Below, one piece after another: positions 4,311 through 46,921 of a stretch of 64,000 nt of DNA; the stretch's first letter is position 1; each line of letters starts with the position of its first letter. The DNA is from Anthoceros angustus. Its lineage: Eukaryota > Plantae > Anthocerotophyta. The notes under the pieces were generated by a model. That model made no database searches. It saw only the letters and a list, made by a program, of their open reading frames with translations, and had not been told where the DNA came from. The stretch is taken from NCBI GenBank assembly GCA_010909165.1, contig VJWM01000116.1, positions 372,001-436,000 of the forward strand, in the 5' to 3' direction. Both the position numbers and the translations under genes were made by a program.

Positions 4311-4335
4311 CTTTGGAACTCGTAGACAGTACCCC

Positions 4336-11560: not shown

Positions 11561-14048
11561 GATAGAAAGGTGATAGGGTGTTCTTCGTAGCTTTAGAGCA
11601 TAGGATAGATAGATGAGGTGTGTCTATGTGGACGTCCACGATATGTGTAACTTCTTATGTCGCCGGGCTTCCGCCACATCCCTGCACTCCAAAAGACATA
11701 TTTCCTCACCAAATGATATATTTACTGCTTTGCCTTGCGCACAAACAAATTGCGTAAACAATCGACATGCCAAAATTGGAAGAATTCAACAGCCCTTCAT
11801 CACACCGACGAATTAGTGTAAACGATCTGGTATTGGAAACTCCCTGTTGGATTGTGTCTTTGAGTGATTTTTTTGTTTTTTTTTGCTAAGTTTGGTGTCA
11901 AGAAGAGCTAGGTTGTCAGTAGGAAGGAATATTTATACTAAGAAGTGTTCTTGGCCTATGGGTTTGGGTTGTTTTTCTGGGTTAAATAATAATCGGTCCT
12001 TGGACTATGGACTTGGTACTCCTTGGCCTTTGGTCTCGGAATATCTAATAGAAAGTCTATATATGTGTTGGGAGGGGGGTCCTCATATTTGGCAGAGGTT
12101 GCTAAGTCCATAGCCTAGTGGTCGAACCAACCGGGCGGTAGTTGAACTGGTGAGTGGTCGTTGACTAGGGAGTGCGGGGACTATGTTTTGAAGACTGAGG
12201 CTAACCAGACGGTGGTCGGAAGGAGGAGCGGTCGCGAAGGGGAAGTGGTCGAAGGAGAAGTGGTCGCGAAGCCACCATGTAGGGGAATTTCGGGAAATAT
12301 AACCCTAAGGGAACTCGAAAGGCACCAGCGGCGGCATGGGTAGCTCCATACACCTCGGCAGTGGCACGAGCTCGGCATGAGGTCAGGAAGGGCAGTGCCT
12401 TGATGGCGGAGATCTCGCGAGGTCAGTGGAGGTAGGAACCTTGGGGATGACCAAGTTGGAGATTCTGACAGCTATCAAGAATTTGAGGCGTGGCGTGAGG
12501 TTTCGCAGGAGCATGGCGCCTGTGGTCATAGGAAATTGACCGCCAATGGCCCAATATGGACCATTGGAGGGTCAGAGCTGGAGAATTGGCGAGGGAGCTG
12601 GGACTTGGGTTCATGGAAAACGGTGGAGAGTTTGTGGGAGGATTTACTGCATCAAAGAATGAGGAAGGAGGGCCCATGGATTCAAAGAAGAGGACAAAGG
12701 GCCGACGACCAAATCGGAGGAGGGAGATAACATGGGTGGAGTAGTGGCACCCTAGAATAGAACTTTGGATAGGATGCCATCCTCGGACCTAAGGCCGTCC
12801 GAAATTGTAGGCGCCTCCGCTTAGACCTCGAAAGTGGCTATGACGCCCAAAGAATTGTATAAAGGGGCTTGCTGTGCCTCTCATCGATTCTCGTTGAGAT
12901 CCCCACGCCGTGTGGCTGGTTGGAGACGTCCGATTGACAGAGGCGGGGTGCGAGACGCCCTTGGGGTGGTCGAGAGCTTGCTCCGCAAAGGAGTGGAGGG
13001 TGAGTGAGCGCCTCACGACAAAGGAGGAGGAAATCGAGGGATTGGGGCGGGGTCGAGCTTGCTCATAACGCCTACTGTGACGCCCGAGAATTCTTCCTTC
13101 CCTTACCCTTCTTCCTGCTGGTTGTGTTCCGAAATTAAGAGTGTATGTGGTTGTGTGGTTGGAAGCCTGAGGGCGTATCGAGAGAGAGAGAGAATTGGAT
13201 GAAGCGAATCGTGGAGGAGAAGGAAGAGTGGCTGAGCACTGTACGCGATGCGAGGTGTGAGGCTGTGTGGAGAAGTTGGGAAGGGAAACTAACTGAGTGA
13301 ATAATAGTGGGGATTGCGTGGATCAGAGAGAGTCCAAAACGGTGCTGTTCGTGGAAGTGAGCACAAGAGGAAATATCATTGCTTCCGGAATTGTGTGAGG
13401 GCGGCCCCCTTTGTGTGTGTGTGAAGCCGAGAGGATCATGGAACTATGGTCCCTAGAAATCGGTGTGTGTGTGCACGAAATGTGGAGTGTAATAAAGTCC
13501 GACTTCAGCAATGACACGCCGCAGGGATCCGCTGCGCGTAAATAAGTCGCTAGGGTTCGACGTGGGACCCACCCTGAGTCAAGCAACTACCAGTGGTGGG
13601 GGCACCGCGGTAGTAGATCGTGAACGATTTGGGGGAATAAGATCTGGGTCAAGTGGTCTGGGGTAGCTCTGAGGTAGTAGTAGACGAATAGATAGGTAAG
13701 AGGAACAACAGCAGGAAAAGTCCCGACTTAGGTGAAGGTCAGGAGCGATAGAAGTTAGCGTCTCTTGGCACAAACCATTCCCTTGGGAGCGAATCCCAGG
13801 ACTACAACAACATTGAGGGTGAATGTGAACCTCACGGTGTCCCTAGACACAAAGTTACACTCCACAATTAGCCATGGACCCGAGTGCAAGGCGCCACCGC
13901 GGTGTAAATGACCGGACAGAAGTGGCCTGAGTCGATCGCTCAAACCGATGGATGAACACCTACAAAACTCAACAAAACCAACCCACTGCCGAAATAGGGT
14001 TGGGATTTTTCCAAAACCCTTTGATGAGAAACCCTTTCAAAACAGATT

Positions 14049-15014
14049 ATATGATGTCCCGGACGGCCAAAGGAAGCGACACGCCCACTCGCAGGAGAGC
14101 CAAGTGCGGCCTCGAGTCATCAAGAGGGGCCCCGCAATCGCAAGTTGAAAGAGAGCAAGCTAGAGGATGGACCAAGCCTAGGCGAAATGCATCGCGGAAA
14201 AAGTTGCTAGTGCGATCCGAATGCTTGAAGACCGGGTCGAGCTGGCCGAAACTTGCCCCCTTCCCCGAGCAAGAGTGGAGACGAGCCCGAATGGGCCTAG
14301 GGATGGAGGAATCCCAAGGGCCAATTGTTCTTGCCTATACTATCTCTCCAAGAGGGACGCCTGAAGCCCCCGGAGCCCAACCTCGGGAAGCGAAGAAAAA
14401 GACGACATGGCAACTCTCGCTTCGGAGGATAAAGAGTCCCTGGCTAATCTTAGCGAGGCTTGCATGGGAAAAGTCCCCTCGTCAACGCCCGCGATAAAAG
14501 CCTCCGTGATATGTGAATGCCGAATTAAGAAACGGAGGACAAGATGAGGCGTAGAGAGCCCAGCCTCCAAGAAAGCCGCTAGTGCGGAGGTCTCTGCAAA
14601 CCAAAGGCCCCAAAAAGTAACGGAAGGAACGGCCGTCATAAGGTCCCCTGGCCGCACACTCAAGGTGCATGGCGATGTCGCTAAAACCCGCATAAGCCGC
14701 TTGTCGAAATTCCTTAGGCTAGATAAGAAAACTGTGGAGGGGCAACCGCTCGGAGAAGGTACAAGAAAAATGTAAGAGAGGATCTCAAATGCCACTTGTG
14801 GGTCTCCTAGTTGAGAAAGATCATCGATGTGCGCCAAATCCTCAGCCAAAGCCGCGTCCACATAATTGTGGATGAAGGCAGGAGGCCCAATCGGGACATC
14901 ATGAACTCGAAGCCCCGGCGGAGAAGCAATATCCCCCTCCGGATACTGAAGAAAATCCACAACACTAAAGGGAGACCAAACCTTACACTTAATAATTTTG
15001 ACCTTAAGACCGAG
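14049..15014 (-). mobile_element. CRE element post-RT region and CCHC knuckle, unit A
   Basis: LGLKVKIIKCKVWSP...GLRVHDVPIG...SLRNFDKRL...LAAFL and the knuckle region; homologous to 34633-35620. Confidence 0.75.
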
Positions 15015-19597: not shown

Positions 19598-22500
19598 ATG
19601 CTCGATCCAATTTGTACTCCGTATGGTTTCATGAGCGACAGGCCTGCAGCCGGGGAACTTAAGGTGTACAGGCCGAAGAGGAAGCAGGAGCGCAGCAGTG
19701 GCGGGGCTGCGCTGACAGGTCAGGGATGCTGAAATTACGCCCAATGACCCCAAGGACATCCAGCCTGAGCAGGGAGATTGGACAGTTTGGCTGCCCTGGC
19801 CAAGCAGGAGCGGGGTCAGATTCCCCTAGCGAGGAGGAGCAGCAGCACAAGGTTCCTGTGGTGGAGCAGGAGAAGGCTCCCAGGTTCAAGCACCCTGGAA
19901 GCCCAAAAGTCCCGTGGCGCAGCGGCCGGATCAACCAGTCGGGTTGTGGAGGAGGTGAGGTTGAGCCTCCTCCTCCTCCCAAACCAGAGGTTGTGAAGGA
20001 GGAGGAGGTTGAAACAGAGGAGGAAGAGGAAGAGGTGGAGCCGGAGCCGGACCCGGCGTCGGACACCGTGAGTGAAGATGAGAAGCCTCGGCGGAAGCGC
20101 CAGCGCCGTGCACGCAAGCAGGTGAAGGGCAAGGCGGGAGGAGCGGAGAAGGGGAAGGCTCCTGCCAAGGGCAGAAGGAAGTCCAAAAAGGGAACTGGCG
20201 ATGAGGAGGAGGCGGAGGCTGGGGGCGATGATAGGTGTAAGAGATCTGACGGGAAGGCGTGGAGGTGCAGGCAGCCGCTGTTCAAGGAAGGGTGGTGCCA
20301 GTACCATTTCGAGTACTACGAGTGTAAGAAGTCCAAGTCCGCCCCGCCTCCTAGGAGAAAGAGACAGCCGAAGAAGGTTACTACTGCTCGGAGGGGCAAG
20401 GGTGCGCAGAATGAGGCAGCTGGGAGCAAGGATAGTGCTGATGAATCTCAGCACGAGCAGGAGGTTGTTGCTGAACCTGAGGTGAAGAAGGTGAGGAGAG
20501 GTGTGAAGAGGAAGGATAGGGTTGATGTCAAACTCCTCCCAATTGATGAGGGCACTGTGGGTTGTGAGATTTTGCTCTTGGATTGCCCACTTCAGCTTCT
20601 CCTTCAGAGCTGCGTTGTCTGGCTCCACTGTGCTGGAATTGGAGGTTCTTGACGGTGTACTAACGAGTTGGGCAATACGGCGAGTGAGTGGCACTGCGCC
20701 TCCTGCAAGTGTGATTACCTGAGGGGAAAGGAAAGAGGAGCATGTTAGAGATTCGTTGCAGAAGTCTCATCCAGGAGGTGTCACCAATGCTGGAGGTTGG
20801 GAATGTGGCATCGTGTGGAGCCTGTAGGGATACGCAGCGCCGCTATTGTGACCACTGTATAGCCAAGTGGTACCCACACTTGACGATGGAGGATGTTGCA
20901 GAGAGGTGTCCCTACTGTGCTGGCTACTGTAACTGCAAGACATGTCTGCGGAGGGCACGGCCGATAGCAGAGGTGGATGATGCAGGGAAGTCTGAGCACC
21001 TGCTCTATCTCCTGCGTAAGGTTCTGCCGTCTTTGAGTCAAATGAATGAGGAGCAGGCTGACGAGCTGAAGTTTGAGAGGGAGTTGCGGCGTGATCCAGA
21101 TTATCAAGTTGAGAAAACTCAGATATCAATCGGGGAGAGGATGTATTGTGACAAGTGCAAAACTTCAATAGTTGACTATTACAGGACCTGTACAGAGTGT
21201 CAGTATGACCTGTGCCTTAATTGCTGTAAAGAGATCCGGCTGGGAAGCTTGCATCCAGCCCTCCTCAACTCCAAGGATTGACTGAACAAGATGGAGGCCA
21301 CTCAGAGGGATTGGCTGAAGTGGTAGCAGAGGAAGGGGACAGAGTGGGGAGCATTGTTCCTGAAGCTGATGCTATAGAAGAGGTAGATCACGTCGGATCA
21401 CCTTTAGTTGCTGTGTGGGACGTAGATCACGTTGTATTACCTTCAGGTGTTGTGGAGGAGGTAGGTCATGCTGTATCACCTCTAGGTCCTGTGGAGGAGG
21501 TAGGTCAAGTTGCATCACCTTCAGGTGCCGTGGAGGAGGTCGATCAGGTTGCATCACCTTCAGGTGCTGTTGGGGAGGTAGGTCACATTGTATCACCTTC
21601 AGGTGCTGGGGAGGAGGTAGGTCATGTAGCATCAAATTTGGGTGCTTTGAGGGAGGTCAGCCGGGTATCACCTTCAGGTGCTGTGGGGGAGGTGGATCAT
21701 GTTGTATCACTGTCAGGTGCTGCAGAGGAGGTGGGTCTCTTTGTAGCACCTTCACGTGCTGCAGAGGAGGTGGATCACGATGCAAAACCTTCAGGAGCTG
21801 AGGAGGAGCCAGGTCACGTTGCATCACCTTCAGGTGCTGTGGAGGAGGTAGGTCACCTTGTATCACCTCCAGGTGCTGTGGAGGAGGTAGGTCACCTTGT
21901 ATCACCTCCAGGTGCTGTGGAGGTGGTAGGTCACGTTGTGGAGGAGGTGAAGCCTTCTGGAGGTGCTGTGGAGGAGGTAGCTAACGTTGTTGACCTTGTA
22001 ACTGATAAAGTGGATGCTAGCTGCTCGGAAGCTGTGGGAACAGGAGATGCTGAGCTGGAAGAGGATGCGTGCATGTCATCTCTGGGAGCAAGGAAGGTGC
22101 AAGCTCGTCAGCAGCTGTCGAGGATGAGGCTACTGTACCTTCAGCTATGGATGAGGATGCTGGTCTTTCAGTGTCAACTGAGGGAGATGGTAAGGACTCT
22201 TCAGCTACAGCTCACAAAGATGCTGACCCGTCAGATACCAAGACTGGAGATCAGAATGGTCCTTCCGCAATGGGTGACAGAAATGTCTGTATACCAAGCC
22301 TTGACCTGGCAGATGCTTCAGTGCAAGATGAAGAAAAGGCTCATCCCTCCTCTGCACCAGGTGAAGGGGGCCTGCTATTGGCAAATGATGGAGATAATGT
22401 CCGTCCCTCACTGACTGAGCAGGAGACTAGACATCAGAGTGGCCCTTCAGCAATGGATGGAGGAGGTGTCTGTAAACCAAACCCAGACCACGAGGATGCT

Positions 22501-25849: not shown

Positions 25850-26479
25850 CCTAACCTCACTACCATTAGCCACATATCTTACTAAACTAGATCCAAGGCC
25901 TGCATGCCTCACAGATGGTGTGGAGTGTGAACTTGTGTCCAGGGACACCATGAAGTCCACATTTTGTTATCAGAGATGTGACAAGGCTACTTAACACCGG
26001 TGTTGAAGAAGTTGCATCTCCCGCGCTTGCTGTCGTTTTGTACACTACGTTGGCCAACGCCCTTTGCAGAGCGATGGAAACCCTCTGCCGGAAGAAAGCA
26101 ACAATACAAGAAAGGGGGAGGCCAACCCCATTCTTGCGGCTATGATAAGCCTTGGCGTAGGCCTTGACAAACCTAGAGAAATCCTTGCTCATGGCTCTAT
26201 GAGTCTCAATGGCAAGGCGGATGAAGGCGTGGCCAACCTGCAAGGAAAGTACTTGTGGACCTTAGCCGCTGCGCATTCCTTTGCCGTCCAACCTGGAGGG
26301 TTAAGGATAACATGTTCGCAGACACTGTCCTGGGTGGGATTGGTTACAACCACATCAACAACCGAAACTTGATCCCCCCGAGTCAAAAATAGATCAGCCC
26401 TAAACGAAACCCCGTTGAGCAGGGTGTAAGGTCGCTCCCTAAATGGAAGGAACCCGTCTTTCATAGCAATAGAGAATAT
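25850..26479 (-). mobile_element. CRE RLE endonuclease segment, unit B
   Basis: ORFs 26189-26572 and 25887-26243: RADLFLTRGDQVSVVDVVVTNP, AAAKVHKY, AIETHRAMS, RQRVSIALQRALANV. Confidence 0.82.
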
Positions 26480-26759
26480 AACAGCGTCTGTTCTGAAAGG
26501 GGTTTCTCCTGAAACCCCTTTTGGCACACGGACGTTTCCGGACCCCTTTCTGCACACGTCGGAAATCTGCATTGGAATAAGCCTTTTTGGTATTTCTCCC
26601 CTGACATGTCACCCGCAAACATTTCAATTATTGTTGCGATACACGATATGTCACATTATGCATCGGAATTACGAGGGAAAACCATCCAGAGACATTCACG
26701 ATCAGCTTTTTCCTTCAGACTGGCCACGCTATTTGTGCACAAACTTGTGCACTCACATT

Positions 26760-29700
26760 TAAAGCAGTCTCACTTGACAACGGTCTATGTTTCTAGCTAG
26801 TTTGGCGAATGTTGTCTTTCCGTCTCTGGACGACGATGTCATCGTTCTCTTCGGCCGTTGCGGATCGTAAATAGCAAGAGGAAGATATGGCGTTTCTCCA
26901 CCTTGGGATTCGCCAAAGCCAAACGCTCTGGATGTTGGTTGTCCCAAGTAGGGTCGCTTTCCGGTCTTTGCACTTCTTTCCGTCTGGGTTCTTAGGGTTT
27001 TCCGGACCTTTTTTGCCATCTTCTCCTTCTTCTTCCGGGGCCCCGTGATTGACTCAAGTCTTGAAGGTCGATGGGTGCGCATGTTCCTTGAACCAAGTGT
27101 AGCGTTGCGGCCACAGGCAGATCTCCTGCGCCATCTCTTTGGCAAAACCGGATGTCCACGTTTGTGTGGTTTGGTGGTCAACTCTTCCTCGTCGGAAACA
27201 CTTCATGGCCTGTAATACTGCTCGATGAATATTGTGCTCCTCTCTTGGTCAACAACAATACAGCCCGCCTTCCAAGAATGCCGCAAGTATTCCACTCCGC
27301 TTCCGAGCATCCATCTATAACCCATTCCCTCTTCGTGAATAGGTCGTATAGCGGGACCATCAACCCTATTGGCTTTTGGTAAGGAGAAACAACATGGCCA
27401 TCGTTGGACACATTCAAAAGTTTCTTCACGATCGCGCTTATGTCGAATAAACGCAGCATTGCTCCAATCTCTACCGCACTATTGGACAATGCACGCACTT
27501 CCTCATATCTTCAACAGTTGGGTGAACACCATACCCCACATGTCATGTACTCGCTTCTCGTAAAGTCCTCGTCCAAACCAAGTTGTCTTTCTCCCGGACC
27601 ATTGTATAAACCCCCTTTTCACACCATTTTCGCAGCATTTTGACATCCCGCATCCGGTCCGTCCATGCATGAATATCACGGAAAGTCTTGCATTCGGTGA
27701 TTGTCATGAATCCATCCATTATCTTCTCCAAATCCTCACATGTCATCTCCTTATCCCATGTCTCCGATAAATTGCCCCTTGGTAAATCGACGACCAACGA
27801 CTTGTATTCTCTTTTCCCCAAGTAGGCAGCCATTTCACGAATATCACCGCTTATTACCGTAACGGACCTTTTGCTTGCTTTTCGGAACATGGAAAATGTC
27901 TAGTTTTGCTGCAAATCTTCCACCCTCTTCCAATTTCTTGCCGCATTGATGTGCTCTTTGAAGCTATCGGGTATCATCTTCTCTTTGTACTCTTGACTGC
28001 TTGATTATGCCGCAGGATGGAGACGCTCATAGGTGCAACATGAAGACGAGTGCGCAAACTAGTTTGCGACTTGCTAACTCGAGCGGACAATACGCGCAAT
28101 GTGATCAAACACGGTTGAAATTTCGCTATATCTTACGGTGTTGAGTGCCTCGGATATTCTCGCTCAACTTCGCAAATGAATTGCACCTCGCCCGAGCAAA
28201 ATGCGGATGACATTCAACTTCTTGGCCTTCGTTATCCACGTTTTCATGCCACGGTCAACTCGCCTTGAATCACTTTCTCCGGTAGCAGACAACATAATCC
28301 TTTCACCGCTTCCGAGGCATGCCCGAAAACTCTCCAATTGGTCGCATGCATTGGCTTTATAATCAAATTTGGATCCCGCACCGGCTCGTATCCGCCCCCA
28401 CGCTTTGATTTCCCTCTTGCTGCCTTTCTTCGGTTACCTTGCTCGGGAAGCTCACCCTCTCCCAAAGATCGAAAACCTCGTCCACCCGTGTCCACACATG
28501 AGGCGGGACACTAGCAATGCATAGCACGGCAGTTTTCTGGTCGACAAGTCGCTGCATTTCTTCCCGATCTGATGCGTCGCCGATGACGCCTAGCATCCGA
28601 TATAGATTGTACTTCCAATCCATTGTAATGCTAATACCCTCCTCAGCCGCAATTTTCATTTCATCGTGAATATACCGGACTTGCTCAATGAAAGACATCC
28701 TCTTCCGGAAATCTGCCTTGACATTGTGATCTGTGGCCAGACACCGCATCTCTGCCTGGGTTAAGCCTGCATATATATGAGCTTCCATATACCGGAAGTG
28801 TGAGTTCTCCGGTCTTCACAGACAGCGTTGGAACGCATAGAAGCTGTGGTTCCCACCCAATACTCCCATGGTGTACTGCTGCCTTTTCAACTTGTCTTTG
28901 TCAAAGACCTCCACGCTTGCGCACTCCCTTGGATCGATCATACATAGCAGAGGAAGTACTCCCTCTTGCAGGTCCCTTTTTAATTTCCGGAGAAGATGTT
29001 TTCCCACGATTCATCCACTCTTGGATCCGAAAGGCCACGAGTAATGTAGTCCGCTTCTCAACTTGGTGATGGCAACCATATCTATCACGGAATGCACCTC
29101 TTTTTGTGCGCTGACTCTCGAATTTGATGTAACGGGTCCTTATGCTCTTGCGCTCGCTCTACTCTGTCGTTGTCTGACTTTGGTGATGGCCGTGTCGGGT
29201 GTCTCGTCAATGTCATTCCTCTTCCTCTTTTCCCGCTTTGGTTTACCTTTAGTCCTTGCGGTGGCTGGAACATCGCGTCTACCTCCTTTGAGGTTGGTTG
29301 TACACGGCTCGCTCCTTCACGATTCTTTGACCCTCATCCAAACTTTGTAGAAGCTGCTGGGCATCCTCAATGCATGGCGATTCTTGGGACATTAGACGAA
29401 CGTTTTGAGCCCCTCGCTATGTATATCCTCTCTGTTGTTGTCGGCTTCAACTCGCTTGTCCGATGCACATCGTCGTCCTCAACATCTTCATTTGCGGTTT
29501 CATGCTCTTCATATTCTCCACTATCGCCATCCGTGATATCTATACTGGTACCAAGTACCTCTCATTTCTTGTTCCATTGAATCCTCATGCCCTATTGATT
29601 GCGATGATGGTGCTTTGGTCGTGGTTGCGAATCGCCTTTTTCCTTGCCTCTCCATCGCTCTCCGGAGGATCGCTTTCACATGCTTGTTCGGCCATCTTCG

Positions 29701-29790
29701 TCATCATCAACCCTAGAACTATTTCCTTTTGGAGAAACGCCAGCATAGTCCCGAATGTCTGCAATAAAAAGACAACCACGACTCCATTAA
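26760..29790 (-). pseudogene. ParB-like + beta-class amino DNA methyltransferase fusion, copy B, frameshifted
   Basis: Acidic N-terminus; VLPLLCMIDP...VLGGNHSFYA...IYAGLTQAEMRCLATDHN; REYKSLVVDLPRG (DLPRG 27774-27788); SPYQKPIGLM; WVIDGCSG plus a frame-shifted GSGV.ILAAFLEG...IVVDQE. Confidence 0.75.
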
Positions 29791-30559
29791 CTAGATACAT
29801 CAACCAGATACATTAACCAGAGACATCTGGCTGGGCTTTAGATGACACCAAGGCGCATAAATCGTCTTTGGGGCACCTCATGCCGGTCTTGCTGCGTGGC
29901 TGAACTCAGGCCGTCGAGGTGGCGCACTTGTCGCGGCCCAGATGTCACGGTGTGCGCACGCGCAGAATCGTCTGTAAAAGTCAAGCAAGGCCGGCGTCTT
30001 GGCCACTTGTGCATAATGGGGTACCATGGAACGGGTGCGCGCGACGAGCGTCTCATGGTGCCCCATTCGCGCGCTGAAGTGCAGCGAGACCCATGGAGAC
30101 CGCCCGGTCGCGCACGGGCGCGCTTGCCATGTGACCCCTGTCGCGCCCAAGTCACGCGCCGGTGTTATGTTGCCCGGCGCGCAGGGGTTGATTGGGTCCC
30201 AAGGCGAGCACAAGCGCGCCACAAGTCACCCGTGACCGGACATGCTGCCATCAGAAAAAAACTTGGGAAGTTCAGATCATCCTGGTCCACATACCTTGTC
30301 ACTTGTCATAGCTGCGTCCAGTCCACTGCGCAGGTCTTGAGTATTGCATCGCCTTGGAATCAGCTTGTCCGCACTCAAAACCAGCAGGCGATAACAGTTA
30401 GAATTCTTCACAAAGAACTTCTCCTTCATTGTGCATATTAGAAGCTTCATTCTGAATTGCGACCGGACTTCATACATCCAAGCCCATAGAATGTACCCAA
30501 CTACAATCTTCTGCGTCCTCAACGCATCCATATACCCGTTCACCCAGAGCGCCGAAAGC

Positions 30560-31409
30560 ATGGGAGTGGTACAACAGGGACGAGGCTGAGCGGAACTTAA
30601 ATCCCATCGACGTTCCAGATGTCTTTGTGATTCCGGCTCCAGTTTCGCGAACCCTGGAACCGCGTCACATGTATCTCGGGAATTTTAGGCCATCGGGTGC
30701 CGCAGCCATGAAGTTGGCGAGATTTGATAGGGATGTATCCGAGATCAGACGTTGCCACATGATTGCAGTCCCATGTGAGACAGACGATCAGAACCGGCCT
30801 TTCTGGATTGCAGAAGTCGAAGACTTGGATTTCTTATGTGACGAACCTTACCTAGTTGTCCAGTGGTGGGTGCGCAGAGATCATAGCAATGCGTTTGAGG
30901 GAAGGTACCTACCAGAGGAGATATTGGCTCCACACAACAGTGATAAGGAGGGTTTGCGACAACGGAGGAAGCGACCTAAGCATCTGGATCGACTGTTGAT
31001 ATCGGAGACATTTATTTTGGCATACGGGTTCTTCTTTGCAAGGGATAGCACTCTACAAGTCCGTACACAGGAGCTCATCAAGACAAAGCTGTTTGAACTT
31101 CAACATCTACCAGCCATGCAAGAAGTTAATAGGGTTGAAGATATCAGGGAAGACCACCCATTTCCAGAGAGAGTCGCAATGGAGGAAAATGTTGATTCGG
31201 ATGAAAATCCCAAAAATAAGAGTGCAGTAGAACGACAAGCAGGCGCTGATGATGATAGACATCCGACTTCCAGTTCAGCACCAATCGCAACAAGAACCCG
31301 CGGCAGAGGCAACGGAACCGGGACGGCTATTGGTGCTTTTGAAGGCATGTTTGATGATGATCCGGCACAAAATCACCTTCGAAGGAGACGGAAACACCGT
31401 AGAGGATAG
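30560..31409 (+). CDS. Unknown transposon ORF remnant with an aromatic beta-barrel-like (BAH/Tudor-like) segment and an acidic/basic tail
   Basis: ORF 30627-31409: RPFWIAEVEDLDF...YLVVQWW...FEGRY. No clear start, so it is probably a C-terminal remnant. Confidence 0.5.
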
Positions 31410-31811
31410 AAAGGTGATAGGGTGTTCTTCGTAGCTTTAGAGCATAGGATAGATAGATGAGGTGTGTCTATGTGGACGTCCGCCGATATGTGTAACTTCT
31501 TATGTCGTCGGGGCTTCCGCCACATCCCCAGACCTCCAAAAAGACATATTTCCTCAGTCAAATGATATATTTCGCACTCGTTTTGCCTTGTGCGCGCACA
31601 AACAAATTGCAGAAACAACTGACATGCCAAAATTACGGAAGAATTCAGTCACAGGCCCTTCATCACACCGACGAATTAGTGTAAACGATCTGGTATTGGA
31701 AACTCCCTGTTGGATTGTGTCTTTGAGTGATTTTTTTGTTTTTTTTTGCTAAGTTTGGTGTCAAGAAGAGCTAGGTTGTCAGTAGGAAGGAATATTTATA
31801 CTAAGAAGTGT

Positions 31812-32490
31812 TCTTGGCCTTCGTTATCCACGCTTTCATGCCGCCACGGTCAACTCGCCTTGAATCACTTTCTCCAGCATACAATAATCCTTTCACCGCT
31901 TCCCCAGGCATGCCCGAAAACTCTCCAATTGGTCGCATGCATTGGCTTTATAATCAAATTTGGATCCCGCTCGGCTCATCCGCCCCCACGCTTTGATTTC
32001 CTCTTGCTGCCTTTCTTCGGTTACCTTGCTCGGAAGCTCACCCTCTCCCAAAGATCGAAAACCTCCACCCGGTGTCCACACATGAGGCGGGACACTAGCA
32101 ATGCATAGCACGGCAGTTTTCTGGTCGACAAGTCGCTGCATTTCTTCCCGATCTGATGCGTCGCCGATGACGCCTAGCATCCGATATAGATTGTACTTCC
32201 AATCCATTGTAATGCTAATACCCTCCTCAGCCGCAATTTTCATTTCATCGTGAATATACCGGACTTGCTCAATGAAAGACATCTTCTTCCGGAAATCTTG
32301 ACATTGTGATCCGTGGCCGACACCGCATCTCCGGGTTAAGCTGCATATATGAGCTTCCATATCGGAAGTGTGAGTTCTCCGGGTCTTCACAGGCGTTGGA
32401 ACGCAGAAGCGTGGTTCCCACCCAATACTCCCATGGTGTCGCTGCCTTTTCAACTTGTCTTTGTCAAAGACCTCCACGCTTGCGCACTCC
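31812..32490. repeat. ~680-bp copy of 28220-28930 (ParB-like segment) replacing ~80 bp, unit B only
   Basis: Junctions at CTTGGCCT and CACTCCTTGG/ACTCCTTGG microhomologies. Unit A has the uninterrupted sequence at ~11950-12030. Confidence 0.85.
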
Positions 32491-34632
32491 TTGGCCTTTG
32501 GTCTAATATCTAATAGAAAGTCTATATATGTGTTGGGAGGGGGGTCCTCATATTTGGCAGAGGTTGCTAAGTCCATAGCCTAGTGGTCGAACCAACCGGG
32601 CGGTAGTTGAACTGGTGAGTGGTCGTTGACTAGGGAGTGCGGGGACTATGTTTTGAAGACGGTAGGCGAACTAGACGGGTGGTCGTGGAAGGAGGAGCGG
32701 TCGCGGAAGGGGAAGTGGTCGCGGAAGGAGAAGTGGTCGCGGAAGCCAGCCAGCGGTAGGGGAATTTCGGGGAAATATAACCCTAAGGGAACTCGGAAAG
32801 GCACCAGGCGCGGCGGCAGCGGGGTAGCTCCAGACAATTCCTGGCAGGGCACGAGCTCGGCATGAGGCTGTGAAGGGCAGGCCTTGATGGCGGCGGAGAT
32901 CTCGCGAGGCTGTGGAGGTAGGAACCTTGGGGGACTGACCAAGTTGGAGATTCTGAGGCGAGCTATCAGCAATTTGAGGCGCCGTGGGCAGTGAGGTTTC
33001 TGCAGGAGCATGGCGCCTGTGGTCATAGCTGAAATTTCGACCGCCAATGGCCCAATATGGACCATTGAGGGTCGATGGAGAATTGGCGAGGGAGCTGGGA
33101 CTTGGGTTCATGGAAAAACGGTGGAGAGTTTGTGGGAGGATTTACCAGACCAGCAATGAGGAAGGAGGGCCCATGGATTCAGCAGCAGAGGACAAAGGGC
33201 CAGACGACCAAATCGGAGGAGGGTGCGGAGATAACATGGGCAGGGAGTAGTGGCACCCTAGGAATAGAACTTTGGATAGGATGCCATCCTGGACCTAAGG
33301 CCGTCCGAAATTGTAGGGCGCCTGCTCGCCACTGCTTAGGACCTCGAAAGTCCGGTCTATGACGCCAAAGAATTGTATAAAGGGGCTTGGTTGTGCCCCT
33401 CACATCGATAATCGTTGAGATCCCCACGCTGCGTGGCTGGTTGGAGACGTCCGATTGACAGAGGCGGGTGCGAGACGCCCTAGGGGTGGTCGAGAGCTTG
33501 CTCCGCAAAGGAGTGGAGGGGGTGAGTGAGCGCCTCACGACAAAGGAGGAGGAAATCGAGGGATTGGGGCGGCGGTCCGGAGCTTGCTCATAACGCCACC
33601 GTGACGCCCGAGAATTCTTCCTTCCTTACCCTTCTTCCCGCCGGTTGTGTTCCAAATTAAGAGTGTATGTGGTTGTGTGGTTGGAAGCCTGAGGGCGTAA
33701 CGAGAGAGAGAGGGAGAGAGAATTGGATGAAGCGAATCGTGGAGGAGAAGGAAGAGGATCGAGCAAGACGGCGCGAGGTGTGAGGTGTGAGAAGTTGGGA
33801 AGGGAAACTAACTGAGTGAATAATAGTGGGGATTGCGTGGATCAGAGAGAGTCCAAAACGGTGCTGTTCGTGGAAGTGAGCACAAGAGGAAATATCATTT
33901 CTTCAGGAATTGTGTGAGGGCGGCCCCCTTTGTGTGTGTGTGAAGCGGTCGAGAGGGATCAGTGGAACTATGGTCCCTAGAAATCGGTGTGTGTGTGTGT
34001 GCACGAAATGTGGAGTGCAGAATAAAGTCCGACAGGCGCGCAATGGTACCGCCTGTGGTGGATCCGCTGGCGCGCCGCGTAAATAAGTCGCTAGGGTTCG
34101 ACGTGGGACCCACCTCGGTAGTCGAAGCAACTACCCGGTAGTGGTAAGGGGCACCGCGGTAGTAGATCGGGAACGACGGTTGGGGAATAAGATCCGCGGT
34201 CGGGAAGTAAGGTCGGGGGTAGCTCGGAGGTAGTAGTAGACGAATAGATAGGTAAGAGGAACAACAGCAGGAAAAGTCCCGACTTAGGTGAAGGTCAGTA
34301 GCGATAGAAGTTAGCGTCTCTTGGCACAAATCATTCCCTTGGGAGCGAATCCCAGGACTACAACGACATTGAGGGTGAATGTGGACCTCACGGTGTCCCC
34401 AGACACAAAGTTACACTCCACAATTAGCCATGGACCCGAGTGCAAGGCGCCACCGCGGTGTAAATGACCGGACAGGAAGTGGTGTCGGAGCCGCGACTGC
34501 CCGAAACCGATGGATGAACACCTACAAAACTCAACAAAAACCAACCCAGCTTCGGTTTTCGACGAAATAGGGTTGGGATTTTTTCCAAAACCCCTTTTGA
34601 CAGGAGAAACCCCTTTCAAAACAGACGCTGTT

Positions 34633-35620
34633 ATATGATGTCCCGGACGGGCGTCATGCGTAGCGATACGCTGCCCACTCGCAGGACAGCGAGCCAAGTG
34701 CGTCTCGGAGTCATCGAAGAGGGGCCCCGCAACTGCAAGTTGAAAGAGAGCAAGCTAGAGGATGGACCAAGCCTAGGCGAAAATGCATCGCGGCGGAAAA
34801 AGTTGCTAGTGCGATCCGGAATGCTTGAAGACTGGGTCGAGCCAGAAGCCAGAAACTTGCCCCCTTCCCCGAGCAAGAGTGGAGACGAGCCCGAATGGGC
34901 CTAGGGATGGAGGAATCCCAAGGGCCAATTGTTCTTGCCTATACTATCTCTCCAAGAGGGACGCCTGGGCTGAGCCCAACCCTGAAGCGAAGAAAAAGAC
35001 GACATGGCAACTCTCGCTTCGGAGGATAAAGAGTCCCTGGCTAATCTTAGCGAGGCTTGCATGGGAAAAGTCCCCTCGTCAACGCCCGCGATAAAAGCCT
35101 CCAGGATATGTGAATGCCGAATTAAGAAACGGGAGGACAAGATGAGGGCAGAGAGAGCCCAGCTCCCTAAGAAAGCCGCTAGTGCGGAGGTCTCTGTGGC
35201 CAGCAAACCAGTGCCCCCAAAAGTAACGGGAAGGAACGCCTGCTGCTTCGCAAGGTCCCCGGTCGCACACTCGAAGGTGCATGGGCCGATGATGTCGCCT
35301 AAAACCTGCATAAGCCGCTTGTCGAAATTCCTTAGGCTAGATAAGAAAACCAGGGAGGGGGCAACCGTTCGGAGAAGGTACCGGCCGCAAGAATGAGAGG
35401 ATCTCAAATGCCACTTGTGGGTCTCCTAGTTGAGAAAGATCATCGATGCGCCAAATCTCGCCCAAAGCCGCGCCCACATAATTGTGGATGAAGGTGAGGC
35501 CCAATCGGACATCATGAACTCAAGCCCCATGAGAAGCAATATCCTCCTGACATCAAGAAAATCCACAACACTAAAGGGAGACCAAACCTTACACTTAATA
35601 ATTTTGACCTTAAGACCGAG
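34633..35620 (-). mobile_element. CRE post-RT region and CCHC knuckle, unit B
   Basis: QQAFLPVTFGGTGL...ALAAFLGSWAL; ACSLSTCSCGAPL...HLARCPASGQRIATHDA..RDII. Confidence 0.8.
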
Positions 35621-40140: not shown

Positions 40141-40355
40141 CCCAAATAAGCAGGTGGGCTGGGCTGGGCTGGGCTGGCTTGTCTGTCCACCTTCCATATG
40201 TTTATGTGTGCGTATGTTATTGTAGATATGGCTATTATGGGGCCATGTGTCTCTATATATGTCTGTGGCTATGCTGCCTGTCTGACATGGAGTATCCCTG
40301 CTTTCTGTCAGCACGACGACGTTCTGTGAATTGAAGCTGCCCGGACCCTGTGAGA

Positions 40356-42230
40356 ATGCTCGATCCAATTTGTACTCCGTATGGTTTCATGAGCGACAGG
40401 CCTGCAGCCGGGGAACTTAAGGTGTACAGGCCGAAGAGGAAGCAGGAGCGCAGCAGTGGCGGGGCTGCGCTGGACAGGTCAGGGGATGCTGAAATTACGC
40501 CCAATGACCCCAAGGACATCCAGCCTGAGCAGGGGAGATTGGACAGTTTGGCTGCCCTGGCCAAGCAGGAGCGGGGCTCAGATTCCCTCAGCGAGGAGGA
40601 GCAGGAGCACAAGGCTCCTGTGGTGGAGCAGGACAAGCCTTCTCCCAGGATGTCCCGTGGCGCAGCAGCCGGATCAACCAGTCGGGTTGTGGAGGAGGTG
40701 AGGCCGGAGCCTCCTTCTCCCCCTAAACCAGAGGTTGTGAAGGAGGAGGAGTTGGAAACAGAGGAGGAGGAGGAAGAGGTGGAGCCGGACCCAGTCCCGT
40801 CGTCGGCCACTGTGAGTGAAGAGGAAGAGGTGGACCCGAATAAGAATCCTCGGCGGAAGCGCCAGCATCATGCACGCAAGCAGGTGAAGGGCAAGGCGGG
40901 AGGAGCGGAGAAGGGGCAGGCTCCTGCTAAGGGCAGAAGGAAGCCCAAAAAGGGGAGTGGCGATGAGGAGGACGGGGATGCTGAGGAGGATGGTAGGTGT
41001 AAGAGGTCCGACGGGAAATCGTGGAGGTGCAGCAAGCCGGTGTACATGAAAGGGTGGTGCCAGTACCATTTCGAATACTACGAGAGTAAGAAGTCCAAGT
41101 CCGCCCCGCCTGCGAAGAGGAAGAGACCGCCGGAGAACGTTACTACTGGCCGGAGGGACAAGGGTGCGCAGAATGAGGCAGATGGGAGCAAGGATAGTGC
41201 TGATGAATCTCAGCACGAGGAGGAGGTTGTTGCTGAACCTGAGGTGAAGAAGATGAGGGGAGATCTGAAGAAGGATAGGGTTGACGAAGACGAGCAGCAG
41301 GAGGGTGAGGGTCGTGCAGAGGCTGTGGCAGAACCGGAGCCGAAGAAGGGGAGACGTGGGCAGAAGAAGAAGGGTGCGCAGAATGAGGCAGCTGGGAGCA
41401 AGGATAGTGCTGATGAAGCTCAGCAGCAGGAGGAGGTTGTTGCTGAGCCTGAGGTGAAGAAGGTGAGGGGATATCTTAAGAAAAAGGATAGGGTTGATGA
41501 AGATGAGCAGCAGGAGGGTGAGGGTCGTGCAGATGCTGTGGCAGAACCGGAGCCGAAGAAGGGGAGAAGTGGGCAGACGAAGAAGGGTAGTGTGGATGAC
41601 GATCAGCAGCAGGAGGATGAGGGTCGTGTGCAGGCTTTGTCAGAACGGGTGGGTAAGGTGGATGAAGCTCGGCAGAAGGAGGATGAGGATCGTGTCAAGG
41701 CTGTAGCAGATCCGGAGGTGAAGCCTGTTGTGGGGCCGGAGGTGACAGCTTCCAAATCTGAGGCTCCGGAACTGCCGGAGGAGGACACGAGCGCCGAAAC
41801 TGATGATGGGGAGGAGCATGTTAGAGATTCGTTGGAGAGGTCTCCTCTCAAGAGCAGTCACCAATGCTAGAAGTTGGGGAATGGGGCTTCGTGTGGAGCC
41901 TGTAGGGATAGTCACCGCCCCTATTGTGACCACTGTATAGCGAAGTGGTACCCACACTGGACAATGGAGGATGTCGCAGGGAGGTGTCCCTACAGTGCTG
42001 GGTACTGTAATTGTAAGCGGAGGTGGATGATACAGGGAAGTCTGAGCACCTTCCCTATCTCGTGCGTAAGGTTCTGCCATCTCTGAGTCAGAACAATGAG
42101 GAGCAGGTTGACGAGCTGAAGTTTGAGAGGGACTTGCAGGGTGATCCAGCGAATGTGGAGGAGCAAATGCAGGAGCCATCGAAGGCTTCTTCCGATGGAA
42201 GGGCTGAAGAGGATCTAGCGTGTCCTGACT
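40356..42230 (+). pseudogene. Truncated JMJ paralog C (WRC domain retained, JmjC deleted)
   Basis: ORF to 41870 with WRC CKRSDGKSWRC ends at TAG, where copy B has TGG in CHQCW. At ~42147 the sequence jumps from a region homologous to ~21093 to one homologous to ~24280. Confidence 0.85.
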
Positions 42231-42829
42231 GATGTCAGGTATTGGATGCGTCTTTCTGGTCGGTTTGAAATGGAGCTGGCCAGCCACCTTAGGAAAGATT
42301 CTTGAGGTGGCGATACGTGCTCAGCTCTTGGATGTCTTCCCGTACAGTGCAGTTGTGGTTGCCGCCTTGTAGCTTCAGGGCAACCCTGAGTCGATATTCC
42401 TGTTCCATGCTGCATATGTTGCTGTGGAGGGTGACGTTCACCAGTGTCCGATACGATGGGGGAGTGGAAGGATCTCTAGAATTAGGGATGATTGTGCAGG
42501 AAAAGTGTAGTGTTACGTAGTAGTCTTATAACTTAGTCTTCGTTGTATTCTCACTGGCCGAGCCTGGTAATAGTCCAAGGGCAGGGTGGAGCGCCAGAAC
42601 TCACCTGTACATTTACCTATGTAAAGCTTTCATTGACGCTTGAGTTGTGTGATGTTCATATGTTTTGTGAGTGCAATGTACATTCTATCGTGTCACCCAT
42701 TTACGTACCAACATTTCTGGACTTCAACTGCTGCGGGACGTGCTCACTATCTGACCATCATATGGTCATCCCCGGCCTTACTACATCCATGTAGTGTTTT
42801 CTTGCTGCTGTGAAGCTGGGCTTCTAGTC

Positions 42830-45171
42830 ATGGCTCTCATCGGAAGGCCGCCGCAGGTTGCAGCCCTGCAGATCAATGTGCAGCTGAAATTGGGCTTGCC
42901 CATGCAATGCAAGCTTTCCCCTTCATTCTCTTCCCAATACCATATCTTCGGGCGGCAGAAGCGGGAGAGAGCAGTAATGGACAAGAGTCCGGGAATTTTC
43001 AGTGGTGGGCGACTGGCGCTTGTTGTTGCCTCATCGGCGGTGGCACCTCCTCCACCGCCTCCGATTGACGACGATTTGCATGTAAGTTGCCGCCCAACAT
43101 CGTGGGTCTGTTTACCTGCAGCGCAGCTTAATGGGTACTCTCCTGAACTGGGACGCCTTGCAGACGTTGATCGAGGAAATGGGCGCTGAGCTCTCGGAGA
43201 CTGGAGTTGTGGAAACTTTCGGGAACGATGTCGAAGCCATAGAGGCTGCCAGGAATGGTGTTGTGGTGAGGGTTTGTCTGCTGCTGTAGCGGCCAGTACG
43301 CCAAGCTAAGCTGCTAATGTGGGGTTTCCGCTTGTTACAGGTTGCCGAGCTCTCTCATTTTGGCAGGCTTCGCGGTAAGAGCCGTTGCGGCATTTGTTCG
43401 TTTAGTGCAACTGTGCCAAACATCGCAAGGCTCGGTGTGATGGTTTTTTTTTGCTGTAGTCACTGGAGACGACAGGATTAGATTCTTGCACAATCAGAGT
43501 ACAGCTGATTTCCAGTCTCTACGGGAAGGCCAGGTATTTCATTTGTCATGTTCTTGATATGACTGTTTGCGCTGGAGTTTCTGATGTGGTGCCAGTGGCT
43601 CATGCATGCAGTATTGATTTGAGTGTTGACGCAGGGTTGTGATACAGTGTTTGTGACATCTACTGCACGGACAATTGACCTAGCTACCGCTTGGATCATG
43701 GTATGATCTTCTGACCCCGCTATGAAGGCAGCCTGAATTGTGCGCTGCGGATAACGCTTTCCAGTTTTACAGTCACAAAATAATCTTTGCACAGGGTTAA
43801 ATTCTTGGCTGCAGAAGACGGCAGTGATATTGTTCGTATCACCGAACACTCGAGAAAGCCTCCTGAAGATGCTGAACAAGTATGCCCCTCTGTCTGGTGC
43901 TAATGTCAGTTTGTGTCGCATTTTCCTCCAGCAATGAGTTGAAGTCTCTACACGAAATGATGTCTTTCTTGGCCCTTAGGTACATATTTTTTGCAGACAA
44001 GGTTGAAGTGGAAGACATAACAAACAAAACATATTTCTTTTCAATCCATGGTCCCAAGAGCGATGAGGTATAGCGAACGCATCTGTGGCATTTTTATGAG
44101 CTTGCCCAGCTGAAGTACTACGTGAGCTGTTTCTAGCACCAAATGCCACTTTTCTGTTGTCTGAGAATAGTTCAAATTTCCATTGCAGCTTATGAAGCAA
44201 CTGAATCTTGGAGACATTGTGGGGGAGCCTTATGGCACCCACAAACATTATGCCGTACGTGCTTCCAATGTCCAACTTGTCGCCATCTTGCTTCTCTTCG
44301 TTTCTGGTGCTGTAAAAACTGCCATATATTTCCAGTCTGCAGCAGGATTCTGTCTGAAAAGTTGGCCATGTAGGTTGAGGGAACTCCAGTTACGGTAGGA
44401 GTAGGTAATGGCCTGTGGGAGAAGGGTTATTCCTTAATACTGTCGACATCAACCGCTGGGCTTGTCTGGAATCTCATCTTGCGTGCTGGTGCGGTGCCAA
44501 TTGGAGCTACTGCGTGGGAGCGGCTCCGCGTCTTGCATGGTTTTCATCATCCATTCAATCTGCCCTTGGCCGTCTCTGCTGCAAAAGAGGTCGTTTGAAA
44601 GCTAGTTTGTGCGTTGTAACCTTTGAATGCTGCCTGTCCTTCCCAGGTAGGCCAGCGGCAGGCAAGGAACTAGTCGAGGAATTCAACGTACTAGAGGCTG
44701 GACTCTGGAAAACCGTCTCACTGACGAAAGGTACTCGGCAGTCTCTGTTTCCATTCTCCTTCTAGCTAGTTGTCACCACTGACCACAACCTCATGTACCC
44801 GCAGGCTGTTATATCGGACAAGAAACTGTCACAAGGTTGATCACGTACGACGGCGTAAAACAGCAGCTGTGGGGGATCCAACTCGACGGCCCTGCTGAGC
44901 CAGGAAGCAGCATCACCATTGATGGGAAGAAGGTGAGAGGTCGAGCAGCCGACGCATGTTTGTCTTCCAGCAAAACAACGCTCTAATGGTTAAGAGTTTG
45001 TGTCATCAGGTGGGAACTCTCACAAGCTACACCTTGGGGAACGGATCAGAGCATTTTGGGCTATGCTACATCCGCAAGCAAGCTGGAGGTGCCGGGCTTC
45101 AAGTTGACATCGCTGGTGTGAACGGACTAGTTGTAGATGTCCCCTTCTTAACCCGATCTCTTCCATCTTAA
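42830..45171 (+). CDS. Plastid YgfZ/GcvT-like folate-binding (aminomethyltransferase-family) protein, multi-exon
   Basis: Transit peptide, PPPIDDDL, ETFGNDVEA, ELSHFGRLR, YIFFADKVEVEDIT, KELVEEFNVLEAGLW, GCYIGQETVTRLITYDG, HFGLCYIRKQ; GT-AG introns. Confidence 0.9.
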
Positions 45172-45580
45172 TCAAATGGTTACCTTTCTCGTAGGCATCT
45201 TATCCGATTCCAACATTCGCTGTGTGTGTCTCCAGTACTCCGTTGAGCTTCCGTGCACATGCTGTCCAGCGGTTTGTCGTGGTTAAGCGAATACCTACCC
45301 GCCGAAAGCAGAGTCGCAGACACTTGGCTTTGAGACGTTTCTGCTGCCAGGGCACATTGCTCGATCCGCGTTCTCGGCGGTGGGGGAGGCGATCCTGCGG
45401 GATCACCTGGTCCGCGGGCTGGGATGGAGTGTGGCGTGCCGACGGGCTGCCTCGGTACGCTTTGTTGGGGAAACTGTGAATCTGTGGCAGTCATGGATGG
45501 TGCGAGGCTACGGGGATGGAAGTGCAGCGGCATTTAGAGTCTAGGTGTGGTGACCTTGCCAGAGCTTGTTGGGCGGAACC

Positions 45581-46921
45581 ATGGACGGCATGAAGGCGCG
45601 GAACATGAATGCTCTGGTGCTGCGCAGGGTTCAGAAGGAGGAGGAAGTGGCAGCCGCCGAGAGGGAGCTGCCGAGATTCGAATGGATTGAAGTAGCTGAC
45701 AACGTGCAGCGGAAGTATGAAGTCGGAGGCCGCAAGGACAGCAGGCTGGTGGGGGTTGTGCTCAAGGACACCAGGCCTCCTGTGCAGAAGGTGGTGGACA
45801 GCTTTCTGGGCAGGTTTTTTCCTCTGGGATACCCTCACAGTGTGTCAGAAGGATATCTGGCGTATTCTCAGTATCGAGCGGTGCAGCATTTTGCAAGCGC
45901 AGTGCTGTCTGTCTTGTCTACGCAGTCTCTGCTGTTTGCAGCGGGTCTCAGACCTACTCCTGCGCAGGCGACCATTGTGAGCTGGGTGTTGAAGGATGGG
46001 ATGCAGCATATCGGGAAGCTCTTCTGCAGCAGCTTGGGGGCCAGGATGGACTCGGAACCTAAGCGGTGGCGGATATTCGCAGATGTGATGTACGATGTGG
46101 GAGCAGGGTTGGAAGTGATATCCCCGTTCTGTCCGCAGCATTTCCTGGGAGTGGCGGGGCTGGCAAATATGGCCAAGGGTATGGCTCTGGTGTCAGCTAG
46201 GGCCACAAGGCTGCCAGTCTATTCAGCGTTCGCGAAGGAGGGTAACCTGAGTGATTTGTACGCCAAGGGGGAGGCCATCTCAACTTTGTCCAACGTTCTA
46301 GGGCTAGGTGTGGGCATCCACCTGGCGTCCACAGTCTGTGCGTCTATCGAAGGCAAGCTGCTGGTGGCTCCTCTGCTCTCGGCTGTGCATCTCTATTCTG
46401 TGGCACAGGAAATGCGTGCAGCGCCCATCAACACTCTGAACGCACAACGAACGGCTCTACTGGTGGCTGACTTTCTCAGGACAGGTGTAGTGTCGCATCC
46501 TGCCCAGCTGAGAAACAGGGAGCGTCTGGTGCTGCCCATCCGTCTGAACCGTGATGCTGGGAACGTGAGGGTCGGAGCTCCCCTGCATCGAGCTGTGGGC
46601 AAGCCGTCCAAGCTGTTGGAGCTGAAGGAGAGTTTTCGCAAGGAGCGTTTTCTTCTCAACTTCAATGAAAAATGCACCGACCTTGTGTTGCACCAGTCTG
46701 CCACTGGGGAGGATGCCGTGAGGGGCTGGCTGTTGGCAGCTTGCACAGCCAGAGTAGCAGGATCTAGCTGTGGTCGATCGCCCGAGCAATTGTCTGCTGC
46801 CCTGGACAAGGCGTACTCTCAAGTGGAAACTCTGCTGCCGTCTTTCCTGTCTGGATTGAAGGACAAGGGATGGCACACCCATCTTTTCCTTGAGGGCTCG
46901 GGTATTCGAGCAGTCTGGTAG
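45581..46921 (+). CDS. RUS2: ROOT UVB SENSITIVE 2 (DUF647) protein, intron-free
   Basis: Intact ORF: MDSEPKRWRIFADV, ARATRLPVYSAFAKEGNLSDLYAKGEAISTL, ATGEDAVRGWL, KGWHTHLFLEG. Confidence 0.92.
   Translation: MDGMKARNMNALVLRRVQKEEEVAAAERELPRFEWIEVADNVQRKYEVGGRKDSRLVGVVLKDTRPPVQKVVDSFLGRFFPLGYPHSVSEGYLAYSQYRAVQHFASAVLSVLSTQSLLFAAGLRPTPAQATIVSWVLKDGMQHIGKLFCSSLGARMDSEPKRWRIFADVMYDVGAGLEVISPFCPQHFLGVAGLANMAKGMALVSARATRLPVYSAFAKEGNLSDLYAKGEAISTLSNVLGLGVGIHLASTVCASIEGKLLVAPLLSAVHLYSVAQEMRAAPINTLNAQRTALLVADFLRTGVVSHPAQLRNRERLVLPIRLNRDAGNVRVGAPLHRAVGKPSKLLELKESFRKERFLLNFNEKCTDLVLHQSATGEDAVRGWLLAACTARVAGSSCGRSPEQLSAALDKAYSQVETLLPSFLSGLKDKGWHTHLFLEGSGIRAVW

Follow-up and report, generated by a model that had tools for sequence, protein, structure and literature searches.

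The 64,000-nucleotide stretch of Anthoceros angustus DNA analysed here (contig VJWM01000116.1, positions 372,001 to 436,000; hereafter the window) carries a transposon-like element of 8.2 kb at 26480-34632, which bears a methylase-like gene on its minus strand. A damaged copy of the same element lies further to the left, and we call it copy 1 and the element at 26480-34632 copy 2. We consider that 26476-34636 is probably an old Sola1 insertion in a dispersed repeat of the plant, a non-autonomous one with a broken ParB/methylase-like accessory gene, and that the locus was later duplicated or misassembled.

The ends of the element are the best-defined part of the locus. Repeat comparison identifies an inverted repeat at 26476-26511 and 34601-34636, which is 36 nt long including ATAT and 97% complementary, with 0 matches of this kind expected by chance. 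The terminal inverted repeat (TIR) itself comprises 32 nt with one mismatch (26480-26511 and 34601-34632) and is bordered by ATAT on either side, and the termini of the element read AACAG...CTGTT. A 30-nt TIR probe is found at three places only in the 64-kb window, where none is expected by chance, and no match to the TIR turned up in a scan of metagenome contigs. In addition, the subterminal 12-mer RAAAGGGGTTTY occurs twice at each end; the window contains 8 matches to it where 0.68 would be expected, and 6 of these lie at the element ends. The contigs of a public DNA run (X1) were also compared with the window. The features of the ends, including the target-site duplication (TSD), are as follows.

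26476-26479: left TSD, ATAT; a single such tetranucleotide stands at the paralogous empty site (X1 contigs, loose end at 26476)
26480-26511, plus strand: left TIR of 32 nt, which begins with AACAGCG and matches a published insect Sola1 TIR at 17/26 positions
26495-26506 (plus strand) and 26511-26522 (minus strand): two copies of the 12-mer RAAAGGGGTTTY, forming a small hairpin; predicted candidate protein-binding site
34601-34632, minus strand: right TIR, with the 12-mer at 34606-34617 and 34587-34598
34633-34636: right TSD, ATAT

Because ATAT is palindromic, it cannot by itself be told apart from an extension of the TIR, and the paralogous empty site is what separates the two. The left flank belongs to a dispersed repeat, and X1 contigs that derive from other copies of this repeat match the window up to 26476 and then continue with CATGACGTCC. 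The right flank after one ATAT reads TATGATGTCC, which agrees with the X1 contig continuation at 8/10 positions, both differences being C/T transitions. The insertion-free copies of the repeat therefore have one tetranucleotide where the element locus has two, and the target duplication is 4 bp. A 2-bp duplication (TA or AT) had also been considered and was dropped, since the paralogous empty site fits 4 bp.

The repeat in which the element is nested covers 26081-26461 and 34637-35425 and reaches an X1 depth of up to ~770. Its minus-strand open reading frames (ORFs) run on across the insertion site, and no domain was recognised in them. Contigs of the one RNA run used here meet 25954-26207 only through short partial matches (24-65 nt).

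A 4-bp AWWT target duplication is described as a hallmark of Sola1 in PMC3845634, which quotes Bao et al. (2009), and the ATAT duplication fits this preference. The TIR was also compared with the published TIR of an insect Sola1 element of the miniature inverted-repeat type (MITE): 17 of the first 26 positions are identical, a value that 0 of 20,000 shuffles reach. Together with the AACAG...CTGTT termini, which resemble the AACCG...CGGTT of Ectocarpus Sola1-1, these results agree with the original prediction, which had described 32-bp TIRs with one mismatch and ATAT on both sides and had given 4-bp AWWT duplications as typical of Sola1. Inside the element, no ORF of at least 60 aa gave a domain match, and the catalytic-core strings of the Ectocarpus Sola1 transposase are absent from every frame of both copies. 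The right-hand 2.1 kb of copy 2 contains 26-37 stops per plus-strand frame, and 32480-34640 has no usable ORF. Since no remnant of a transposase is found, the copy is taken to be non-autonomous, and it is only through its ends that the element is putatively assigned to Sola1.

The X1 contigs also give an indication of copy number. Their summed depth over the interior at 27478-29000 is 90-420, compared with 4-14 in the single-copy flank; at least this interior part is therefore multi-copy. Two neighbouring parts, 29002-29382 and 26716-27477, have almost no X1 contig cover beside these regions of depth 90-420. Abundant relatives seem to lack these two parts, or to differ in them, and the QKP/motif I region of the gene described below is included in the second.

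The methylase-like gene occupies the left-hand part of the element on the minus strand. Its diagnostic peptides are VVDLPRG (27774-27794), YQKP (27370-27381) and VIDGC (27307-27321), and in the direction of the gene its pieces are arranged as follows, where profile positions refer to the custom methylase profile introduced below.

28819-29010, minus strand: ORF with the ParB-like string VLGGNHSFYAFQ (28843-28857), maybe joined to the next ORF by an intron of ~56 nt with GT..AG borders
28366-28815, minus strand: upstream ORF of the methylase-like gene, which ends in a second GD...PP block, VIGDAS...CIASVPPHVW (28498-28587)
27546-27899, minus strand: N-terminal methylase-like piece, with VTVISGD, then SLVVDLPRG (motif IV-like), then LVWTR; collinear to profile positions 5-105
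27495-27542, minus strand: bridging fragment HVGYGVHPTVEDMRKC, between the stop at 27543-27545 and the frameshift near 27493-27494
27181-27510, minus strand: C-terminal methylase-like piece, with the SPYQKP helix (27370-27381), the motif I-like VIDGCSEAEWNT from 27307, and then ILGRRAVLL

Three breaks interrupt the gene. One is a stop codon in frame at 27543-27545, another is a shift of frame near 27493-27494, and the third, near 28816, is either a stop or a GT..AG intron of ~56 nt. At the bridging fragment, copy 1 has one extra base and keeps the frame there. The one RNA run gave no cover of the element. Of the minus-strand methylase gene proposed in the original prediction, the peptide strings and their order are recovered, and its integrity is not, since what remains is a series of short ORFs with breaks between them.

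We analyzed the resemblance to beta-class (N6_N4-type) methylases with a custom profile of 32 non-redundant beta-class methylases from viral contigs, for which E. coli YhdJ was the seed. The protein of copy 2, joined with X at the breaks, scores 6.8 bits, and 1 of 3000 shuffles reaches this score; hhalign of the same protein against the profile gives P = 0.003 over 175 columns. In the alignment, VTVISGD...SLVVDLPRG matches the GD / DPPY block of the profile, LVWTR pairs with its W.K strand, and SPYQKPIGLM...WVID covers HP.QKP / motif I. The X-joined protein is thus collinear to the profile in the permuted order of the class, which runs from motif IV through the target-recognition region and the QKP helix to motif I. 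As a control for selection bias, a six-frame translation of the whole 64 kb was cut into 3168 overlapping segments of 240 aa. The top six segments all come from the copy 1 gene (13-17 bits) and the next four from the copy 2 gene, while the background maximum is 2.6. The highest score belongs to a 74-aa ORF of copy 1 at 7531-7752 (minus strand) with the block SPYQKPIGLMVTLYDLFTEKREWVIDGCSGEWNT, which reaches 17.5 bits against 7.9 for the best of 10,000 shuffles. The equivalent in copy 2 reaches 1.5 bits only, as two small indels remove most of the score. Because the rank and the scores against the custom profile exceed both the shuffles and the background of the window, we take a methylase-like domain of the beta class to be present in the 3' part of the gene, as far as can be judged at the sequence level.

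General libraries were also searched. Pfam, PF01555 included, gave nothing for any of the 81 stop-to-stop ORFs of at least 60 aa in the element, nor for selected pieces at E values up to 10. PHROGs and NCBIfam returned noise only for the element ORFs, and neither PDB sequence searches nor tblastn of these ORFs against phages found a match. The beta-class assignment made earlier from the sequence finds agreement in the custom profile and in the permuted order of motifs, and the Pfam N6_N4_Mtase search does not reproduce it. A phmmer search of the N-terminal piece against 1.84 billion proteins produced six matches, all of them bacterial surface proteins with Ig repeats, which were discarded as spurious. 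In the ESM Atlas, the N-terminal piece shows methyltransferase-like features (0.84), a weak lead, and the C-terminal piece is patatin-like, which is uninformative. A single-sequence AlphaFold2 (AF2) model of the N-terminal piece has the order beta-alpha-beta-alpha-alpha-beta-beta, which is plausible, at a low pLDDT of 59.

The key motifs of the gene are non-canonical. At the aligned position of the catalytic motif IV, both copies have DLPR and not (D/S)PP(Y/F/W). The cofactor-binding motif I reads DGCSGEWNT in copy 1 and DGCSEAEWNT in copy 2, compared with D-P-F-x-G-S-G-T-T, so that only D, one G and T are kept. A frame-shifted reading of motif I as 'LGSGVE' was dropped, because the in-frame DGCSGEW aligns better. 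The DLPR codons recur in a high-depth X1 short-read contig and are therefore typical of the abundant X1 copies rather than a private mutation. Owing to the stop, the frameshift and the non-canonical motifs, copy 2 is expected to make no active methylase, and as judged from its sequence it can neither methylate nor move by itself. The earlier suggestion that this family could write N4-methylcytosine (4mC) or N6-methyladenine (6mA) in the plant genome accordingly fails for copy 2, in which the gene is interrupted, the motifs are DLPR and DGCSGEW, and there is no transposase.

The upstream region was compared with a second profile, made from phage ParB-methylase fusion proteins. The best places in the window are 28000-29199, which includes the 28366-28815 ORF, and the internal duplicate of this region, with only 4-5 bits. 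The aligned part of this profile is the GD / motif IV block and not the ParB domain, and on the side of the element it corresponds to VIGDAS...CIASVPPHVW. Two GD...P-P blocks thus lie ~640 nt apart on the minus strand, VIGDAS...SVPPHVW (28498-28587) and VISGD...DLPRG (27774-27857). A double domain, tandem or degenerate, could account for them, as could a rearrangement within the gene. The ParB-like string, VLGGNHSFYAF, was seen directly in the sequence, and a word-indexed search of 5.8 billion proteins with the ParB-like ORF found nothing.

On the opposite strand lies the longest ORF of the element. Its ESM features score 0.88, with all ten named matches being BAH; it has no Pfam match and no homologue among the 5.8 billion proteins. 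Judging from these features, it may be the chromatin-reader part of a second gene of the family. The remaining features of copy 2, together with copy 1, are listed here.

30456-31406, plus strand: longest element ORF (317 aa), in divergent orientation to the methylase-like gene; perhaps BAH-like
31811-32494, minus strand: internal duplicate of 28219-28932 (ParB-like part and first GD...SVPP part); 93% in self-comparison
32495-34600: right-hand 2.1 kb, which lacks a usable reading frame and any transposase remnant; 18-nt tandem repeat at 32679-32745
5275-14052: copy 1, the same insertion in the other unit of the tandem block, with the left TIR at 5279 and the right end near 14048

Self-comparison of the window reveals a tandem block of ~21 kb, in which 1-20525 corresponds to 21173-41284. 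Copy 1 is rich in small indels, its right TIR is damaged, and its left end is duplicated locally over 1.57 kb (4332-5881 against 5898-7428); a start at 6838 is a degraded TIR inside this duplicate. The left and right flanks of copy 1 are exactly identical to those of copy 2 (26476-34636), and copy 1 lies within the tandem block. Therefore, copy 1 is the same insertion duplicated with its surroundings. The second copy that had been proposed at 5279/6838-14048 is not an independent one, and its shared flanks provide no evidence of mobility.

The two units of the block also differ in a way that bears on the quality of the assembly. In the host-gene parts the identity is 99.7%, and the differences amount to 28 indels and 15 substitutions; the transposon parts are 88-93% identical, with transitions about as frequent as transversions and a small indel every ~40 bases. 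Similarly, the internal duplicate consists of blocks that are 97-100% identical between 28219-28932 and 31811-32494 and are parted by small indels. From the sequence, this pattern looks less like divergence than like poor long-read polishing of repeats. The tandem block may reflect a true later duplication together with ~21 kb of host DNA, or a false one made by the assembler. The assembly is suspect here, and frameshifts in the window call for caution.

Several results weigh against a Sola1 insertion with a methylase/ParB-like accessory gene. In the window and the X1 contigs, we found neither an independent insertion with its own flanks nor a full-length autonomous relative. No ORF found a methylase or ParB match in the curated libraries, in PDB, among phages (tblastn) or among 1.84 billion proteins (phmmer). 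The strong profile match is a block of 42 residues and is strong only in the indel-rich copy 1. The ParB-like part has no statistical support, as both Pfam ParB_N (PF02195) and the phage ParB-methylase profile are negative. Foldseek of the low-confidence AF2 model against PDB found no match below E 0.06 and no methylase. Finally, a 170-nt X1 contig of depth 186 has one G fewer at 27775 (in the GGGG after DLPR), which breaks the frame; it also carries A>G at 27790. Most members of the family in X1 are therefore out of frame at motif IV.

Could the gene be intact, and possibly active, in the real genome, with the stop, the frameshifts and the odd motifs being in part artefacts of long-read assembly? 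The contrast between host parts (99.7% identical, more indels than substitutions) and transposon parts (88-93%, dense small indels) would fit this, as would the 97-100% identical blocks of the internal duplicate between small indels and the fact that the indel differences between copy 1 and copy 2 fall exactly at the frame breaks of copy 2. However, a substitution rather than an indel produces the stop at 27543-27545. High-depth short-read contigs show the DLPR and SVPPH codons as well, so the motifs are not assembly noise. Moreover, the one RNA run shows no RNA at the locus, and neither unit has a transposase; we regard an intact gene as unlikely. The opposite extreme, in which a Sola1-type non-autonomous element resembles a methylase and ParB by chance and its ORFs are unrelated or captured sequence, seems equally doubtful. 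It has in its favour that all curated libraries, the exhaustive sequence search and the structure search are negative, that the ORFs were picked by eye from 64 kb, and that the canonical catalytic and S-adenosylmethionine-binding residues are absent. A chance resemblance would hardly place the gene in the top ten positions of an unbiased six-frame scan of the window, give the QKP/motif I block 17.5 bits against a shuffle maximum of 7.9, or align the N- and C-terminal halves in the correct permuted order. In addition, published Sola1 elements bear exactly such a gene (PMC12477816).

The methylase type is mainly prokaryotic, which could suggest bacterial contamination, a chimeric contig or a recent island of horizontal transfer instead of a resident plant transposon. 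This explanation is very improbable, since the GC content of the element resembles that of its surroundings, plant repeats and plant-type genes (WRC+JmjC, RUS) stand on both flanks, and a paralogous empty site exists. The element also shows no sequence-level similarity to phage or bacterial sequence, and its gene has a short GT..AG intron-like gap. A DIRS-like retroelement was considered as well, since this group has inverted repeats at its ends, and DIRS1 elements combine them with an inactive methyltransferase domain (PMC4738411). No signal of reverse transcriptase, RNase H or tyrosine recombinase appears in any ORF, the element has a 4-bp target duplication, and the DIRS domain belongs to a different, PCIF1-like methylase group; we therefore give this explanation almost no weight.

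We thus return to the non-autonomous Sola1 insertion. A single old insertion of a Sola1-superfamily element would have entered another dispersed repeat of the plant genome, and this copy could have moved only with a transposase that a full-length relative provided. The minus strand would retain an accessory gene of the family, which at the level of motifs has a beta-class methylase-like domain at its 3' side and a ParB-like string at its 5' side. By analogy with the Ectocarpus element (PMC12477816), the ParB-like domain of intact members may bind the element's own DNA, and the methylase-like domain may mark or merely bind this DNA, which would aid self-recognition or protection. Later on, the whole locus would have been copied together with ~21 kb of host DNA, unless the doubling is an error of the assembler. 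More speculatively, the Sola1 accessory protein of this plant lineage might be non-canonical or dead as a methylase throughout the family (DLPR / SVPPH; DGCSGEW) and serve as a DNA-binding self-recognition module, paired with the BAH-like chromatin reader of the opposite strand; or it might be an enzyme of new chemistry and a possible source of domesticated plant N4-cytosine methylases. We hold this proposal to be a long shot.

The closest known system is Sola1-1_Ec32 of Ectocarpus (Genome Biol 2025, PMC12477816), an autonomous element of 21.5 kb with AACCG...CGGTT termini, a 4-bp TSD and 282-bp TIRs. It encodes an intact protein of 1104 aa with ParB-like and N4-cytosine/N6-adenine methylase parts opposite the transposase (PMC12477816). 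The Anthoceros element shares with it the 4-bp TSD, the AAC.G termini and an accessory gene with a putative ParB-like part and an N4-cytosine/N6-adenine-type methylase-like part. It differs in its length of 8.2 kb, its 32-nt TIRs, the lack of a transposase, the broken and non-canonical gene, and the plant host. The pairing of Sola1 with a ParB-methylase is not new, as the idea of self-marking was published for Ectocarpus in 2025, where earlier algal reports are cited (PMC12477816). Nor is Sola1 new to land plants. As cited in PMC12477816 and PMC3845634 from Bao et al. (2009), Sola1 has been listed for Physcomitrella since 2009 (Repbase Sola1-1_PPa), and by BLAST the Ectocarpus transposase matches the Physcomitrella one best (PMC12477816). 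As described there, the Physcomitrella element resembles ours in the hallmark AWWT 4-bp TSD and in its land-plant host.

Other systems resemble parts of the element. The insect Sola1 MITEs (Sola1_NA, Bombyx, Rhodnius; PMC3845634) are likewise non-autonomous, with AWWT/AWDT TSDs and the TIR core CGTyTrTTyTGAAAGkGGT; however, they are 200-700 bp long and have no coding remnant, whereas 8 kb of internal sequence is kept here. Fusions of ParB_N and N6_N4_Mtase in phages and plasmids (for example, the 418-aa protein of Streptococcus phage Javan124) have the order suggested for the element, namely ParB-like, GD/motif IV, QKP and motif I, and the ParB motif stands at a similar distance from the first GD block in both. 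The plant gene has no significant sequence similarity to these proteins. It far exceeds them in length and contains two GD...P-P-like blocks, and neither DPPY nor FxGSG occurs in it. DN4MT1 of Marchantia and N4CMT of bdelloids are further cases of prokaryote-type amino-methyltransferases in eukaryotic genomes; unlike the remnant in the element, both are host genes that are intact and expressed, and their 4mC activity has been demonstrated.

A transposon that encodes a prokaryote-type DNA methylase of its own could use it to mark its DNA or to shield it, a possibility raised for the algal elements. The occurrence in a plant extends the known range of the family, and a plant host with good genetics would provide a system to ask whether such proteins write 4mC/6mA or only bind DNA. 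Copy 2 adds little to this question, as it is dead, has no transposase and lies in an unreliable-looking assembly, and it is among the least informative of the family. Its main uses are as a clean example of the ends and target duplication of the family, and as a warning that an apparent second copy need not be independent.

Some features of the surrounding DNA are also apparent. At 42187-46356 the right part of the repeated block recurs a third time, as an older and incomplete copy (82-89%). A protein sequence search with the ORF at 40335-41867 gave no match. Three ORFs of the window match UVB_sens_prot (RUS); the ORF at 45554-46918 is probably among them, which would suggest an older tandem gene array. 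In each unit, an array of 39-nt (13-codon) tandem repeats, at 104-848 and 21275-22024, is located within a long plus-strand ORF upstream of WRC/JmjC-type gene parts. Lastly, an uninterrupted ORF of 403 aa, whose exact product has no entry in the public gene-position collection, lies at 53378-54589 on the minus strand; it encodes a GTPase of the YchF/OLA1 type and is apparently intronless.

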